Source: Obrimoposthia wandeli (taxonomy: Eukaryota). Taken from it: a DNA stretch of 64,000 bases. Made by a program: the position numbers and the translations under genes. Shown piece by piece: positions 4,230-38,100 of the stretch. The notes below the pieces were generated by a model. It was not told where the DNA came from. It worked only from the letters and a program-made list of their open reading frames with translations, and searched no databases. The DNA lies in assembly GCA_977020255.1 (NCBI GenBank), contig CDROCS010003649.1, positions 1-64,000 of the forward strand, written 5' to 3'. The first letter of the stretch is position 1, and each line of letters starts with the position of its first letter.

Positions 4230-4305
4230 TGGAGCGGTACAAGAGGCTCGAACTCTTGACCTCAACCTTGGCAAGGTTGCGCTCTACCAACTGAGCTAGT
4301 ACCGC
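4230..4305 (-). tRNA. tRNA-Gly(GCC), copy 9 in transcription order
   Basis: GCGGTACTAGCTCAGTTGGTAGAGCGCAACCTTGCCAAGGTTGAGGTCAAGAGTTCGAGCCTCTTGTACCGCTCCA: full cloverleaf, GCC anticodon, U73, encoded CCA. Confidence 0.99.
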
Positions 4306-4379
4306 TTAATTTTGTGTTCTCGTCTTGAAACAGGGTTTCACAACTTATCTCTATTTATCATTGGTGTGATAAGAGAGAT

Positions 4380-4455
4380 TGGAGCGGTACAAGAGGCTCG
4401 AACTCTTGACCTCAACCTTGGCAAGGTTGCGCTCTACCAACTGAGCTAGTACCGC
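4380..4455 (-). tRNA. tRNA-Gly(GCC), copy 8
   Basis: Identical 76-nt sequence. Confidence 0.99.
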
Positions 4456-4515
4456 ATCACTGTGATTTATAGTTTCTCAACTTATCTATCTAATCATTGG
4501 TGTGAAAAGAAAGAT

Positions 4516-4591
4516 TGGAGCGGTACAAGAGGCTCGAACTCTTGACCTCAACCTTGGCAAGGTTGCGCTCTACCAACTGAGCTAGTACCGC
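4516..4591 (-). tRNA. tRNA-Gly(GCC), copy 7
   Basis: Identical 76-nt sequence. Confidence 0.99.
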
Positions 4592-4662
4592 ATCACTGTG
4601 ATTTAAAGTTTCTCAACTATCCGACTCACTCAAATGAATTAACATTCAAATCAATCTGAATT

Positions 4663-4738
4663 TGGAGCGGTACAAGAGGCTCGAACTCTTGACCTCAACC
4701 TTGGCAAGGTTGCGCTCTACCAACTGAGCTAGTACCGC
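4663..4738 (-). tRNA. tRNA-Gly(GCC), copy 6
   Basis: Identical 76-nt sequence. Confidence 0.99.
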
Positions 4739-4797
4739 TTCATTTTGATTTAGAGTTTCTCAACTTAACCTTCTAATCATGGTATGAAAAGAAAGAT

Positions 4798-4873
4798 TGG
4801 AGCGGTACAAGAGGCTCGAACTCTTGACCTCAACCTTGGCAAGGTTGCGCTCTACCAACTGAGCTAGTACCGC
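4798..4873 (-). tRNA. tRNA-Gly(GCC), copy 5
   Basis: Identical 76-nt sequence. Confidence 0.99.
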
Positions 4874-4932
4874 ATCACTGTGATTTATAGTTTCTCAACT
4901 TATCTCTATCATCATGGTGTGATAAGAGAGAT

Positions 4933-5008
4933 TGGAGCGGTACAAGAGGCTCGAACTCTTGACCTCAACCTTGGCAAGGTTGCGCTCTACCAACTGAGCT
5001 AGTACCGC
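4933..5008 (-). tRNA. tRNA-Gly(GCC), copy 4
   Basis: Identical 76-nt sequence. Confidence 0.99.
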
Positions 5009-5079
5009 TTCATTTTGATTTAAAGTTTCTCAACTATTCGATTCACTCAAATGAATTAACATTCAAATCAATCTGAATT

Positions 5080-5155
5080 TGGAGCGGTACAAGAGGCTCG
5101 AACTCTTGACCTCAACCTTGGCAAGGTTGCGCTCTACCAACTGAGCTAGTACCGC
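5080..5155 (-). tRNA. tRNA-Gly(GCC), copy 3
   Basis: Identical 76-nt sequence. Confidence 0.99.
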
Positions 5156-5226
5156 TTCATTTTGATTTAAAGTTTCTCAACTATTCGATTCACTCAAATG
5201 AATTAACATTCAAATCAATCTGAATT

Positions 5227-5302
5227 TGGAGCGGTACAAGAGGCTCGAACTCTTGACCTCAACCTTGGCAAGGTTGCGCTCTACCAACTGAGCTAGTACC
5301 GC
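5227..5302 (-). tRNA. tRNA-Gly(GCC), copy 2
   Basis: Identical 76-nt sequence. Confidence 0.99.
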
Positions 5303-5335
5303 ATTAATTTTCTACTTGGTATTAAAATATAAGAT

Positions 5336-5411
5336 TGGAGCGGTACAAGAGGCTCGAACTCTTGACCTCAACCTTGGCAAGGTTGCGCTCTACCAACTGA
5401 GCTAGTACCGC
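5336..5411 (-). tRNA. tRNA-Gly(GCC), copy 1 (promoter-proximal)
   Basis: Identical 76-nt sequence. Confidence 0.99.
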
Positions 5412-12853: not shown

Positions 12854-13828
12854 TTAAGCTCGAGGGGTAGGAAAGGCAATTACCTCATCAAGGCTATTTG
12901 CACCCATCATCAGCATCACTAACCTATCTATACCTAACGCCACACCTGCGCAATCAGGGAAGCCTGCCGTTAATGCATCAATCAGATGATAGTCGATAGG
13001 TTGCTCAGATAAATCCATGGTCTTACGCTTAGCATTATCGGCTTTAAAACGTCTTAACTGCTCTTGCGCATCAGCGAGTTCATGAAAACCATTAGCCAAT
13101 TCAATGCCTTTAAAATACACTTCAAAGCGCTCTGCCACACGTGAATCCTGTGGGCTAATACGCGCTAATGCCGCTTGCGATGCAGGGAAATCATAAATAA
13201 AACACGGCACGTCTTGGCCAATTTTACTCTCGACACCCACGTAAAATAATAACTGTAAAATAGTATCTCGGTCAGGTTCATTCTCTAATACGTCATAAAC
13301 CCCGTACGGTTTTGCCGCTTGACGTAATTCATCCATCGTCGCGGTTAGCGGGTCTAGCTGTAAAAATTGTTTGAATGCATTTTGATAAGTGAAGCGCTGC
13401 TCTTTACCAGAACCTAATATAAGAGTGATTAACTCAGACATTTCATCCATCAATTTAAAATGGTCAAAGCCGATCCGATACCATTCCAGCATAGTAAATT
13501 CAGGGTTATGATGACGCCCAGCTTCTTCGTTACGGAACGATTTACTCATCTGATAAATACAACCACTGCCTGCTGCTAGCAACCTTTTCATGTGGAACTC
13601 AGGGGATGTTTGCAGATATAAGGACAGACCTTGGCTGTAACCGGGGCCAACAAATACCGTGCTAAATGCATCTAAATGCACATCTGTCACAGCAGCTTGA
13701 CTCATCGCCGGCGTATCCACTTCTAATACATCACGCGTCGCAAAAAACTGACGAATGCTATTCAATACCGATGCTCGCGCACGTAATGCTGTAAAACTTG
13801 CACTCGGCTGCCAATTTAATTCACTCAT
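12854..13828 (-). CDS. epmA: EF-P--(R)-beta-lysine ligase
   Basis: LysRS-like catalytic domain only: [51 protein letters not shown]; start moved to 13828 behind GGAG. Confidence 0.96.
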
Positions 13829-13881
13829 ATCCACTCCGGTTATCATAACCTAAAAAGTTAATGCTATTCATCGTCTGCATA

Positions 13882-14032
13882 ATACCCATTCCTATAAACC
13901 ACTGTGCAGAGAAATATTATTGCTATCGCAAACATACATGGCCATGGATGGCCTTGTCTAAGCGAACATGGATGTCTTGAGCGGTTTGCAGGAGTAATAT
14001 TATTTAGCGCATTTAATTATTGAAATTTGTAT
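13882..14032. mobile_element. 151-bp MITE-like dispersed repeat, copy A
   Basis: Same length and near-identical core as 34876-35026; imperfect terminal inverted repeats ATACCCATT/AATTTGTAT; nested internal palindromes; no ORF. Confidence 0.8.
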
Positions 14033-14050
14033 TATGGTTTTCCAAAAACT

Positions 14051-14077
14051 AAAATGCCAGTCAAAGACTGGCATTTT
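14051..14077 (-). terminator. efp intrinsic terminator
   Basis: AAAATGCCAGTC-AAA-GACTGGCATTTT perfect 12-bp stem. Confidence 0.85.
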
Positions 14078-14116
14078 ATCGTTCATTAACACTAATCAAG
14101 TTAGCGCATAATCAAC

Positions 14117-14683
14117 TTATTTAACACGACCAACATATTCGCCAGTACGTGTATCAACTTTAACTACTTCACCGATTTGGATGAATAGTGGTACGCGTAC
14201 AACGGCACCAGTAGTCAATGTTGCAGGTTTACCACCCGTACCCTGTGTATCGCCTTTTAGGCCAGGATCTGTTTCTACTACTTCCAATTCAACAAAGTTT
14301 GGAGGTGTAACAGCAATTGGGTTATCGTTCCACGTAGTAATAACGCAGATATCTTGTTCAACTAACCATTTAGCCGTATCGCCAACTGCTTTTGCGTCAG
14401 CTTCAACTTGCTCAAACGACTCATTGTTCATAAAATGGAAGTATTCGCCATCGTTATATAGATACGCTAATTCTATTTCCATTACGTCAGCTGCTTCAAC
14501 AGTTTCGCCAGACTTAAATGTTTTTTCTAGAATTTTACCAGAAACTAAACGACGAACTTTAACGCGATGAAATGCTTGGCCTTTACCTGGTTTTACATGA
14601 TCATGGTCGATGATAGAGCAAGGCTCATTATCAAGCATGAATTTTAAACCGCCTTTAAAATCACTGGTTTTGTATGTTGCCAT
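14117..14683 (-). CDS. efp: Elongation factor P
   Basis: VKPGKGQAF loop with the modified Lys; C-terminal TDPGLKGDT...[11 protein letters not shown]...DTRTGEY. Confidence 0.98.
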
Positions 14684-33393: not shown

Positions 33394-34845
33394 ATGACTG
33401 TATTAGCAACCGATTTTTCTCAAGAAACCCGCCTAGAAACTGACTTACTAGGTGTTAAAAAAATACCTGCACAAGCGTACTACGGTATTCATACATTACG
33501 TGCAATGGAAAACTTCCGCATCAGTAATGAGAAGATTGGTGACTGTCCCGAATTTGTACGCGGCATGGTAAAAACGAAAAAAGCAGCAGCATTAGCCAAT
33601 GGTATTTTGGGGACTATTCCTGAAGACATCAGTGATGCGATCGTTAAAGCCTGTGACACATTACTAGCAACCGACGACTTCTATAATCAATTCCCGATTG
33701 ATGCGTTTCAAGGTGGTGCTGGTACATCAGTAAACATGAATACCAATGAAGTGATTGCGAATATTGCCTTAGAGCAAATGGGACACAGCAAAGGCGCTTA
33801 TGCTCATATCAATCCCAATGATCATGTAAATAAAAGTCAAAGTACTAACGATGCCTACCCAACAGGCTTTCGTGTTGCCTTGTTCGAACGTTCAAATGCT
33901 GTATTAGCAGCGTTAACGTCATTAAGCGATACTTTCTTAACTAAATCAGTCGAGTTCAACGACGTATTAAAAATGGGTCGTACCCAGTTACAAGACGCTG
34001 TTCCGATGACATTAGGTCAAGAGTTCCGTGCGTTTGGTATTACCCTAAGAGAAGAAATTAAAAGCATCAAACGTTGCCAAGAATTACTGCTGGAAGTTAA
34101 CTTAGGCGCAACTGCAATCGGAACAGGGTTAAATACCCCAATCGGTTATTCAGAATTGGCGATTGCTAAACTAGCTGAGATCACAGGCCATGCATTTGTA
34201 CCTGCTGAAGATTTAGTGGAAGCAACGTCTGATTGTGGTGCTTATGTAATGTTGTCGAGTGGCTTAAAACGCTTAGCAGTAAAACTATCTAAGATCTGTA
34301 ACGATTTACGCCTGCTTTCTTCTGGTCCTCGTACTGGTTTAAACGAAATTAATCTACCAGAAATGCAAGCGGGCTCATCGATCATGCCCGCTAAAGTAAA
34401 TCCCGTTATTCCTGAAGTAGTTAACCAAGTAGCATTTAAAGTGTGTGGTAATGACATCACTATCACCATGGCTGCAGAAGCAGGTCAATTACAGTTAAAC
34501 GTAATGGAACCAGTGATTGGTCAATGCCTATTTGAATCGCTAACGTTATTAGAGAATGCCTGTTTCTCACTAGAGAACAAATGTATTAAAGGTATTACTG
34601 CTAACCGCAAGGTCTGCCAAGACTTCGTATTAAATTCAATTGGTATCATCACTTATTTAAACCCATTCATTGGCCATCATGAAGGCGATACGATTGGTAA
34701 AATCTGTGCAGAAACAGGTAAGAGTGTACGCGAAGTGGTTCTAGCGCGAGGCTTATTGTCTGAAGCTGAATTAGATGAAATATTCTCTATCGAAAACTTA
34801 ATGAATCCAAAATATACAGCGCAACGTTTCTCGAAAGCAGTCTAA
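33394..34845 (+). CDS. aspA: Aspartate ammonia-lyase
   Basis: [38 protein letters not shown] signature. Confidence 0.97.
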
Positions 34846-34875
34846 TGTTGAAGGCATAAGCTAAGACATAAGCTA

Positions 34876-35026
34876 ATACCAATTACTATAAATAACTGTA
34901 CAGAAAAATGCTATTGCTATCGCAAACATACATGGCCATGGATGGCCTTGTCTAAGCGAACAGGGATGTCTTGAGCGGTTTGCAGGAGTAATATCATTTT
35001 GATCACTTAGTTTTCGGAATTGGTAT
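34876..35026. mobile_element. 151-bp MITE-like dispersed repeat, copy B
   Basis: Perfect 9-bp TIR ATACCAATT/AATTGGTAT; core nearly identical to 13882-14032; in the aspA 3' region. Confidence 0.82.
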
Positions 35027-35050
35027 AAAACATAAATTAACTGCTTAAAC

Positions 35051-35092
35051 AAAATCCCCGTTACTGCTATAAACAGTAACGGGGATTTTTTT
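35051..35092. terminator. Bidirectional terminator between aspA and the RND permease
   Basis: AAAATCCCCGTTACTG...CAGTAACGGGGATTTTTTT. Confidence 0.88.
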
Positions 35093-35124
35093 ATGCGTTC
35101 AAAAACTTTAACAACGGCTTATAG

Positions 35125-38100
35125 TTAAACCGCGACTGCTGTTACCGCAAATGCTCTTTTACGACTCATCAGTACAAAGATTGCAGGTACAAAGTAAAAC
35201 GATAATAACGTCGTTAATACCGTACCACCAGCGATAGCAATGGCAAATGGCGGCCAGAAACCACCACCCGCCAAGATTAATGGTAAGAAACCACCAACCG
35301 TAGTAATAGTCGTTGACGAGATATGTCGCGTGCAACTGGTGATAGCATTGATAATCGCCTCACGATCCCCCGCAACAGCTTTCGGATCTGATTTTAATTC
35401 CGCCAAAATAACAATCGCGGCATTAATTGCCAGCCCCATTAAGCCGAGTAAACCTATGATCACCGTAAAACCAAACGGGTAATTAAACACATAAATACTC
35501 AGTAGCCCTAACCCCACAGATTGAATTGCGGATAATACAATTACCCCACCCAAGCGGAATGAATTAAATGACAGCACCACGATAATAATCAGCAGCATCA
35601 CTATGACGCCAACACTGGCTAACAAATTACCGACAGCACTATTACGTTCCGCCGATTCACCACCAAACTCCATACGATAACCCGGCGGTAGTACAAAATT
35701 TTCACTGGCTAATCGCGCAGAAAAATCACTCAATACTGTTGACGGTAATACCCCAGATACTAAATAACCTTCAACCGTATTAACCCGCACCCCATTCCAA
35801 TGCGGAATCGCACCACGACTCGGGCTTAACGCTAACTCGGTTAGTGCCACCAGCGGAATATTACCTTGTGATAGTGGTGAGCTTAGGCTGATATTAGCTA
35901 AGTCAGACAAGCTACTGCGTTGTGCATTAGCAATCTGCACCCGTACCGGGATTGATTCCGTTGCTTCGATAATCGAACCATTCACCGTACCATGCAAGGT
36001 AGATTGTAACTGTGTTGCCACATCAGTCAGGGTTAGACCGGCTAACTGACTGACATCTTCGTTAATCTTCAGCCATATTTTCGGTAATCCAGGTTGAATA
36101 GTAGCGCGCGTATGGATGACGTTCTCAGTGCCAATTAAGATCCGCCTAGCTTCGTCACCCAAGGTTTTTAAGGTATCGAGATTCGGACCAAACAAACGTA
36201 ATTCAATTGGCGCTCTAAACGGAGGTCCCTGCTCTAATTTACGCACTAATATCTGCGCTTCAGGGATCGCCTTATCGAGTAATATTTGTAATGACGGTAC
36301 TAACGCATTAACTTGCTGAAAGCTATCACCAGTGACCATAGCTTGGGCATAATACTGGGCGCCATCTTTACTCGGCATCAAGTTATAGTAAAAAGACGGG
36401 GCATTGTTACCAATAAACCAACGTACTTTACTGATCCCTTGTTGCTGTGCTAACAAGTCACTGATAGTTTTCGTCATCACTTCTGTGGCAACAATACTGG
36501 TTTGTACTGGCATAAACAGTTCGATATGAAACATGTCGCGATCTGATGCTGGAAAAAATTGTTCATCCAGATGTTTAGCTAACATAAATCCACTTAACGG
36601 TAAGATAAATACCACTGCAATACTCAATTTAGGTCGATCTAATACCAATACTAATGACTGACGGAATGCCTTAGCTAAACCGGCTAATTCAATACCATTG
36701 TTATACCAAGTCATTGGCCGCGCAGATTCCCCTTCAGTATTACCCTTCAGGAATTGCCCTGATAAACCCGCCACTATGGTATGTGATACTAAATACGAAC
36801 CAATTAAAGCAAAGATAACGCTTAAGGCAATACCACTAACGAATTCACCCGATGGACCCGGCATCATCACAATCGGCATAAAGGCCAATATCGTGGTTAA
36901 CGTCGAACCTAATAACGGCAACCATAAATGTTTGATCGCCCCTTGTACCGCAACGCTAGCACTTAAGCCTTGTTGGCGACGTTTTTGAATGGTATCCGCC
37001 ATGACAATTGCGTTATCTACCATAATACCAAGAGCAACAACCAAGCCCGTAACTGACATTTGATGAATAGGTAAGCCGTAATAGTTCATCACAGTTAGCG
37101 TAAACAACACTGTTAACGGTAAAGACAAGGTGACAATTAATGCTGCGCGCCAGCCTAAGGTCACAAATAACACCACGGCGATCAGCGAGAAACCAATCAA
37201 GATGTTCTCGACCAGACCTTGCAACCGATCTTCGGTGTACTGAGATTGATCAAACAATACTTCGGTGGTTAATGACGCTGGTAATTGCAGGTTAAAACCG
37301 GCCACCACGTTATCTACTTCGGCACTCCATTTATCAATGCGTAAATTCGGCAACATGCGCGTGGATACCACAACCGCATATTGACCATCAACCAGTGCGA
37401 TTTCTTGCGCTGGCCACTGGAGTTTTTTGTTTATCTGGGCAATGTCCCCTAACCGCACGACACCACCGTTACTGTCATTGAGTAACGGGATCTGACGGAT
37501 CCGGTCGACAGAATTAAACGATCCAGCTACTTCGATCTGCATTTGGTTATGATCATTAATGATATTACCAGCAGACACTTTGGCATCAGCAGCTAAAATA
37601 ATGTTGGAAATAGCCTGCGTTGATAACGACAAATTAGCCGCTAAATGCTTATCTATTTCCACCAATATTTGTTCTTCGCCACGACCGAATAAACTGACAA
37701 TATCAGTACCCGAGATCACCTTTAATTGATTTTGTAATTCCTTGCCATAACGACCCAGCGTGGTCAAATCGACCTTACTATCACCCTGCCATTTAACAGC
37801 TATCAATTGCGTGTAGGCATAACCACGGTCGTCCTCTAATCGCGGTGCGACAGCCGCTGGCGGTAACTCACTAGTCACATCATTAAGTAGATCTCGCACC
37901 CGAGACCACACTGGCACTGTATCGGTAATTGTATCGTGTAATTTCAACTGCACGATAGAAATACCCGGACGAGATGTAGAGGTAATCCTTTTAATATCAG
38001 CAAGTTTACGTAGCTTCTGCTCTATTTTTTCAGTCACTAATGCTTCCACACGCTCAGCACTCGCGCCCGGTAATATCGTTAACACACTCGCGATCCGGTT

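Follow-up and report, generated by a model that had tools for sequence, protein, structure and literature searches.

The stretch analyzed here, a 64,000-nt window of contig CDROCS010003649.1 (assembly GCA_977020255.1, Obrimoposthia wandeli), carries two copies of a short palindromic repeat that is, in our judgement, almost certainly a miniature inverted-repeat transposable element (MITE) of the IS630 family. At the center of the repeat lies a twin-hairpin module whose base pairs covary and whose two apical loops stay the same, in both cases as a sequence of the type preferred by the RNA-binding regulator CsrA. As the best explanation of the evidence as a whole we favor, with modest confidence, an IS630-type MITE whose core is kept for clamping CsrA.

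The first-pass annotation of this DNA had described two copies of a 151-bp repeat, and both are indeed there, at 13882-14032 (copy A) and 34876-35026 (copy B), on the same strand and 87% identical over 151 nt without gaps. The 151-bp span is real, but the element proper measures 145 bp (13885-14029 and 34879-35023), the rest being one base plus TA on each side. These boundaries, TA-CCAATTCC...GGAATTGG-TA, were set from an alignment of 38 matches from six genomes in which TA stands on either side of all full-length copies; with CCAATTCC and GGAATTGG as terminal inverted repeats (TIRs), a length of 145 bp and no open reading frame (ORF), the repeat is a short non-coding TIR element. All of the smaller features described earlier, namely the TA-CC...GG-TA termini, the GCAAAC/GTTTGC stem, both inner hairpins and the motif CAGGAG (34983-34988 in copy B), could be found again, although the last of these, which had been taken for a third hairpin, is not conserved outside Moritella. 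The four GGA triplets in 151 nt, where about 1.9 are expected from base composition, are not significant on their own; as a repeat the element is far beyond chance, the core module alone scoring 106 bits (E about 1e-29) with the covariance model described below.

The window is bacterial in character (41% GC) and lies inside an assembly of 1.35 Gb. Since an exact 21-mer of the repeat is confined, in a species-level genome collection, to Moritella records (plus one chance match), the host of the element is a Moritella bacterium, contigs of which sit within this large assembly of eukaryote size. The assembly holds eight matches of the repeat, two of them on duplicate contigs. Among 13 genomes of Moritellaceae the MITE is present in five, with about 20, about 9, two and one copies and, in one genome, only an old degenerate copy, so that copy number ranges from 0 to about 20. 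Evidence for movement comes from sites with and without the element. At site A, the spacer between efp and epmA, the element is shared by the window and its closest relative, G003, alone; 11 other Moritellaceae genomes lack it there. At site B none of the 13 relatives carries the element, and in G003 a single TA marks the exact spot. Two more filled/empty pairs, involving one copy in G001 and one in G003, are clean absences; an empty site in G002 likewise shows a single TA, and the other further empty sites are too diverged to read. Two DNA sequencing runs show that the insertion at site B also occurs in other strains. The earlier reading of the repeat as a TA-flanked TIR miniature of IS630 type is thus borne out by the empty sites, by the patchy copy number and by an IS630 remnant with the same end (see below). 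A blastn search of the element against the PLSDB plasmids gave no match, and carriage on plasmids is therefore unsupported.

Two candidate readings were set aside. The first was a target duplication of 9-13 bp at site B; the repeats flanking copy B belong to a local 12-nt tandem unit that the empty site has as well and that differs in number from strain to strain. This unit (cataagctaaga-like) occupies window positions 34846-34875, immediately to the left of copy B, and since all four public runs that were compared with the window are one unit short (12 nt missing at 34855), its copy number differs between strains. The second was a truncated right-end copy in G003 (locus L047), considered as the end of a full insertion sequence (IS); it is just a remnant beside queA-like and other genes.

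The link to IS630 comes from the ends. The left-end 16-mer of the MITE, ATACCAATTCCTATAA, occurs twice without mismatch in G013, a genome lacking the MITE, and at both sites it forms the outer end of a truncated IS630 transposase gene. These transposase remnants match DDE_3 and NF033545 (the NCBIfam IS630 equivalog) at 134 bits, and 15-16 terminal bases are common to them and the MITE. The only complete IS630 relative was found in G007; it is 1,096 bp long, has two overlapping ORFs and the TIR CCAATTGC, and is flanked by TA on both sides. It shows 69% protein identity, and its TIR is similar, not identical, to that of the MITE. The truncated G013 genes thus end like the MITE, but no full-length IS630 partner with identical ends was found. 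A profile search for IS630 transposase in the five MITE-bearing genomes, including the complete G003 chromosome, returned none, and because the carrier genomes lack this transposase the MITE copies appear to be stranded, which fits their 79-98% identity to copy B in relatives. At one G013 locus (L089, 470-1734) the MITE-ended transposase gene is cut at its 5' side beside a 206-amino-acid ORF on the opposite strand. By eye this ORF looks like an IS110-family transposase; if so, one IS would have inserted into another.

The center of the element has a wider distribution than its ends. A BLAST comparison of the element with 300 genomes from its GTDB order recovered just the central 60 nt, between different arms, from an unrelated genome of another genus (G269), at 93% and 80% identity. 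We aligned 14 diverse versions (A2), and the structure that RNAalifold derived from them consists of a stem that closes the module, a first hairpin (hairpin 1) and a second one in two parts (hairpin 2). The covariance model built from A2 (R1) matched 17 of the 151 genomes that were drawn from the order, often in many copies each (G016 has at least 27), as well as 3 of another 150 that were drawn from the class. Whatever the genus, the module forms the apex of a longer palindrome, and the arms of this palindrome vary between genera. Judged by these matches, the central module is not confined to Moritella and reaches marine relatives in the order, where a broader set of palindromic repeats carries it as a conserved payload.

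Several lines of evidence indicate that the module is maintained as a fold. In an R1-derived alignment of 39 distinct sequences we found that: (i) standard pairing is seen in 92.5% of pair cells, compared with 34-45% when the partners are slid; (ii) double changes occupy 176 cells, compared with 53 in shuffles, and none of 500 shuffles attains 176; and (iii) 16 of the 21 pairs show compensatory change. Copy B has a fold energy of -41.5 kcal/mol (z -3.2). Because G.U pairs are common in the stems (one pair is G.U in 18 of the 39 sequences) and the model strongly favors one strand (106 bits on + against 15-17 on -), the folded strand is the + strand, most simply as RNA.

In the G016 family the elements are about 125 bp long (loci L161-L168 and L142), and their long arms change in compensation from copy to copy, for example ATGTCTGGG/CCCAGACAT against GTGGCTGGA/TCCAGCCAC, which suggests that the whole rod, and not the apex alone, is maintained. 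In G031 there are head-to-tail arrays in which each unit consists of the twin-hairpin module and a second hairpin; these measure 5 x 168 nt and 4.4 x 253 nt (L131, 734-1580; L148, 1416-2496), and one of them adjoins a tRNA gene. Neither array was matched by the Rfam CsrB model.

It is the loops that point to CsrA. Both apical loops read C-A-N-G-G-A-U-G although the stems have been fully turned over, the motif CANGGANG being present in hairpin 1 of 34 of the 39 sequences and in hairpin 2 of 37, and wherever a sequence carries both sites (32 of 32) they lie 22-25 nt apart. The consensus selected for CsrA by SELEX is RUACARGGAUGU, with ACA and GGA invariant; structurally, the CsrA/RsmE site is an ANGGAN hexaloop closed by C-G, and a single CsrA dimer can span a pair of sites separated by 10-63 nt, more than 18 nt being optimal (PMC7652899). 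Both hairpins have the A-N-GGA-N loop, the short stem and the C-G closure, and their spacing lies within the bridging range of the dimer. Copy B is an exact match to ACARGGAUGU, as had been noticed at first sight, and copy A has U at the R position. The suggestion that the repeat carries CsrA-type GGA loops is thereby put on a firmer footing, that of a covarying two-hairpin module whose loops equal the published CsrA/RsmE consensus. Each of the five module-bearing genomes tested has a single csrA gene.

The conservation of the loops among distant copies is in part circular, because the covariance model rewards those very loops, and this has to be counted against a CsrA reading. The pattern within single families is free of that bias: in ten G016 copies all four bases occur at the N of hairpin 2 and its neighbors are fixed, and the Moritella copies likewise vary in the loop solely at N (G, U or A).

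One copy appears to have been retained for a long time. In four Moritella species a TIR-less copy, 73% identical to the MITE core, lies in the spacer between convergent thiolase and sufE-like genes, where eight other species have an ordinary terminator hairpin instead. Among three of the four it is 96-98% identical over 111 nt, whereas identity falls to 70-79% at third codon positions of the flanking genes and to 56-89% in the adjoining spacer; the copy of the fourth species differs chiefly by a 14-nt indel. Relative to the MITE, hairpin 1 of the old copy shows a compensatory swap of C-G to G-C. Judged from these substitution patterns, the copy is under purifying selection. It matched no Rfam family at E<=10.

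In the scenario that we envisage, an IS630-type transposase moved the 145-bp MITE by cut-and-paste into TA, mostly just downstream of genes, and has since been lost from the genomes carrying it. As + strand RNA, the long imperfect palindrome folds into a rod with a three-way junction at its apex, from which two short hairpins each present C-A-N-G-G-A-U-G, 22-25 nt apart, a geometry that suits the two RNA-binding faces of one CsrA dimer. A copy transcribed in sense, as copy B in the 3' untranslated region (UTR) of aspA probably is, would then clamp CsrA and might in this way bring its host transcript under Csr control or remove a small amount of CsrA by titration. The data themselves show that the element is mobile and belongs with IS630, that its fold covaries, that the loops are invariant and that one old copy is under purifying selection; the binding of CsrA and a regulatory effect of the module are what we infer from its loops and fold. 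We would give slightly better than an even chance to the proposal that docking of CsrA on sense transcripts is the reason for the retention of the core; since the loops match the consensus obtained by selection, in vitro binding of CsrA to the module is the likelier of the two predictions.

Several observations weigh against a role in CsrA docking. Young Moritella copies keep GGA no better than its surroundings, and hairpin 1 is the least conserved and most often damaged part of the core in these copies. Nor is there a bias of the copies towards transcription of the GGA strand, as would have suited the first-pass proposal of a mobile non-coding element that seeds CsrA-binding sites as sponges or regulon members. 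The mobile, TA-duplicating and non-coding character in that proposal has held up and the expected orientation has not. The 26 Moritella loci comprise 14 convergent, 4 sense-tandem, 6 antisense-tandem and 2 divergent arrangements; by the position of terminators, the GGA strand should be transcribed in about ten contexts and the opposite strand in about nine. Copy B is one of six convergent loci at which the element lies inside the transcription unit of the sense gene. In other genera, 10 of 28 loci are convergent, and three copies are in sense and six in antisense.

Any titration by the MITE would also be small beside that of the CsrB-type RNA of the same genome. This RNA is encoded on contig C506 of G000 at about 2694666-2695650 (locus L006, 389-1373, + strand). 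Rfam reports three adjacent CsrB genes there (77-86 bits), and the sequence forms one continuous array of about 17 tandem units, 49-50 nt long and each with four GGA, after which come a unique 3' part and a terminator; in all there are about 66 GGA motifs in about 985 nt. The array is an unusually large CsrB-type sponge or possibly an expansion produced in assembly. Because this RNA has about 66 GGA motifs, some 20 two-site copies of the MITE would add little titration. Furthermore, the Rfam CsrB, CsrC and Rsm models did not match the element even at E<=10, and no Rfam family fits the element when the window is searched at the gathering threshold and the copies and arrays at E<=10. One MITE copy lies 128 bp past the terminator of the CsrB-type RNA, in the opposite orientation. 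A derivation of the core from this neighbor was considered and ruled out, as the sequence shared by the two is only the 8-mer TTGCAGGA.

With regard to expression, two marine metatranscriptome runs were compared with window positions 33800-35600 (1,801 letters). In these runs contigs continue out of aspA up to 70 nt into copy B, at which point the assembly graph breaks at the repeat, and they end short of the convergent gene. No contig spans 35081-35202, and in both runs the depth is zero or nearly so at 35081-35263, past the terminator. These data are compatible with copy B being part of the aspA 3' UTR; their weight is reduced by the fact that the contigs are unstranded and without end information and that DNA carry-over is possible.

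Much of the above would be expected if the repeat were an ordinary selfish MITE whose hairpins are purely structural, serving as an extension of the rod, as a stabilizer of transcript ends or as a terminator-like element, so that the likeness to CsrA sites would be of no consequence. The strong preference for the 3' ends of genes and for spacers between convergent genes (14 of the 26 loci in Moritella, 10 of 28 in other genera), the replacement of a terminator hairpin by the old copy, the random orientation relative to transcription and the lack of extra GGA conservation in young copies are all in keeping with this idea. What a role in structure alone leaves unexplained is that eight loop nucleotides are fixed in two hairpins while every stem pair covaries, that only N is free, and that the spacing is constant at 22-25 nt. 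We regard this explanation as unlikely, if still a serious competitor to CsrA docking.

A different possibility is that the module is read as single-stranded or extruded DNA by a DNA-binding protein such as an accessory transposition factor, an HUH-type enzyme or a nucleoid protein. There are parallels in repetitive extragenic palindromic (REP) elements with their REP-associated tyrosine transposases (RAYTs) and in attC sites, and strand-specific conservation inside mobile palindromes with different arms, the copy-by-copy covariation of the G016 arms, which suggests maintenance at the level of the hairpin, and the absence of an orientation bias linked to transcription could all be accommodated. 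We consider a DNA site improbable, however, because the frequent conserved G.U (G.T) wobble fits RNA better, because the complete G003 genome shows no replichore bias (the + strand is leading in 7 of 18 copies) and because the element has the ends and the TA duplication of a cut-and-paste DDE family, which acts on double-stranded DNA. No HUH gene turned up either, though no search was aimed at HUH genes. Least probable of all, with only a slim chance in our estimate, is a multicopy family of independent small RNA genes with their own promoters and terminators acting as Csr antagonists, which would account for the irrelevance of neighbor-gene orientation and for the head-to-tail arrays in G031 but is at odds with the lack of a conserved promoter-like hexamer pair or U-tailed terminator (by consensus reading and terminator scan), with a sole -10-like TATAAA that sits 9 nt from the left end, so that its -35 would fall in variable flanking DNA, and with the lack of an Rfam CsrB match.

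The features of the two copies and of their neighbors are collected in the table. The spacer that holds copy A has a history of its own. In six other Moritella species a different palindromic insert stands in the epmA-efp spacer where the window has copy A (L050, L053, L054, L059); in G008 it is about 73 bp long, with arms ctaattaaag...ctttaattaa, and the spacer is orthologous to window positions 13847-14050. Four species have neither insert, and small elements have thus struck this spacer repeatedly. Elsewhere in the window, on the minus strand at 4230-5411, tRNA-Gly(GCC) is encoded by nine genes in tandem, spaced about 109-150 bp apart and each scoring 67.2 bits with the Rfam tRNA model.

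Table. Positions of the two MITE copies, their parts and the adjoining genes and terminators in the window.
Feature	Position	Strand	Remarks
epmA (EF-P beta-lysine ligase), downstream of copy A	12854-13846	-	NF006828, 485 bits
TA target-site duplication, left of copy A	13883-13884		the complete G007 IS630 element has TA flanks too
MITE copy A, element proper, 145 bp	13885-14029	+	between efp terminator and epmA start, in opposite orientation to both
Copy A twin-hairpin core module	13928-13989	+	R1 106.4 bits on +, 17 on -
Copy A closing stem (P1)	13928-13933/13984-13989	+	
Copy A hairpin 1	13936-13957	+	loop UGGA 13945-13948
Copy A hairpin 2 apex ACAUGGAUGU	13966-13975	+	carries ACATGGATGT
TA target-site duplication, right of copy A	14030-14031		
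efp terminator hairpin, beside copy A	14051-14078		
efp (elongation factor P, EF-P), upstream of copy A	14117-14683	-	TIGR00038, 255 bits
aspA (aspartate ammonia-lyase), 3' UTR received copy B	33394-34845	+	TIGR00839, 779 bits
TA target-site duplication, left of copy B	34877-34878		
MITE copy B, element proper, 145 bp	34879-35023	+	between aspA stop codon (34845) and aspA terminator, oriented as aspA
Left TIR of copy B, CCAATTAC	34879-34886	+	family consensus CCAATTCC; same as G013 IS630 remnant end over TA + 13 nt
Copy B twin-hairpin core module	34922-34983	+	R1 106.7 bits on +, 15 on -
Copy B closing stem (P1), GCAAAC/GTTTGC	34922-34927/34978-34983	+	
Copy B hairpin 1, GGCCA-UGGA-UGGCC	34930-34951	+	loop UGGA 34939-34942
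Copy B hairpin 2 apex ACAGGGAUGU	34960-34969	+	carries ACAGGGATGT
Right TIR of copy B, GGAATTGG	35016-35023	+	
TA target-site duplication, right of copy B	35024-35025		
Bidirectional intrinsic terminator of aspA and the convergent RND permease gene	35051-35092		downstream of copy B; kept in all relatives

More tentatively, and with the odds somewhat against it, the twin-hairpin core could be a portable CsrA-docking module that has been spread in marine Gammaproteobacteria by different MITE lineages with different ends and perhaps different transposases. In that case transposition would keep wiring new transcripts into the Csr regulon, and occasional copies would be domesticated, as may have happened with the one that replaced the terminator between the thiolase and sufE-like genes. 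Such a mobile element, acting in cis on behalf of a global post-transcriptional regulator, would belong to a class undescribed in bacteria. CsrA regulons vary widely among species and the route by which targets are gained is poorly understood; a high-affinity two-site CsrA clamp delivered by a transposable element into 3' UTRs and operon spacers would be a simple route to rapid regulon turnover and a bacterial counterpart of the regulatory sites that are borne by transposons in eukaryotes. Even if CsrA did not bind, there would still be a compact RNA motif absent from Rfam (about 62 nt, 21 base pairs, two invariant loops), that is, an unexplained and strongly covarying structure in a widespread repeat family. 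A literature search that combined CsrA with MITE, IS630, ERIC or repeat families brought up no paper in which CsrA and MITEs are connected.

There are precedents for individual properties of the element. Enterobacterial repetitive intergenic consensus (ERIC) sequences, also called intergenic repeat units (IRUs), are 127-bp TA-flanked palindromic repeats of Enterobacteriaceae and Vibrio that are usually counted as IS630-type MITEs. Like the present repeat, they are small, imperfect, TA-bounded palindromes that lie between genes in either orientation, are cotranscribed and form RNA rods. However, to our knowledge their center has no twin CANGGAUG hairpins, and the MITE family described here is restricted to Moritella and its core to marine relatives. 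In 5,426 complete E. coli genomes, blastn (word size 11) retrieved nothing similar to the element at E<=0.01, and membership in ERIC is therefore unsupported. A second parallel is provided by the Correia elements (CREE) of Neisseria. These MITEs, about 100-150 bp long, also duplicate TA, and their hairpin, when transcribed, contains RNase III and IHF sites that alter host mRNAs. Their ends, core and bound factor are all different from those considered here, and we know of no report of CsrA-type loops in CREE.

Compared with the IS630 insertion sequences themselves (NF033545; DDE_3), the element shares TA + CCAATTCCTATAA with the end of the G013 remnants, resembles the complete G007 element with its end CCAATTGC, and has the same TA duplication; it differs in having no transposase gene and an unrelated interior. 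With CsrB, CsrC and RsmX-Z it shares GGA in the loops of short hairpins and the CA-N-GGA-UG context (PMC7652899), the sites in Moritella's own CsrB being GCAGGAUGC, CACAGGACA and similar. Those RNAs have 18-66 sites, whereas the element has two, is mobile and multicopy and lacks a promoter or terminator of its own; furthermore, it is not matched by RF00018 or RF00084 at E<=10, while the true CsrB 128 bp from one of its copies scores 77-86 bits. Finally, the E. coli tRNA-linked repeats (TLRs) RrA, RrB and RrF are present in read-through transcripts of their host operons, and these RNAs have GGA in their loops and are bound by CsrA in vitro (PMC8144298). Unlike the MITE, the TLRs do not transpose; they belong to rRNA/tRNA operons of one species group and have no structure in common with the module, but as a repeated intergenic family with GGA loops they are the nearest published case to a CsrA-binding MITE.
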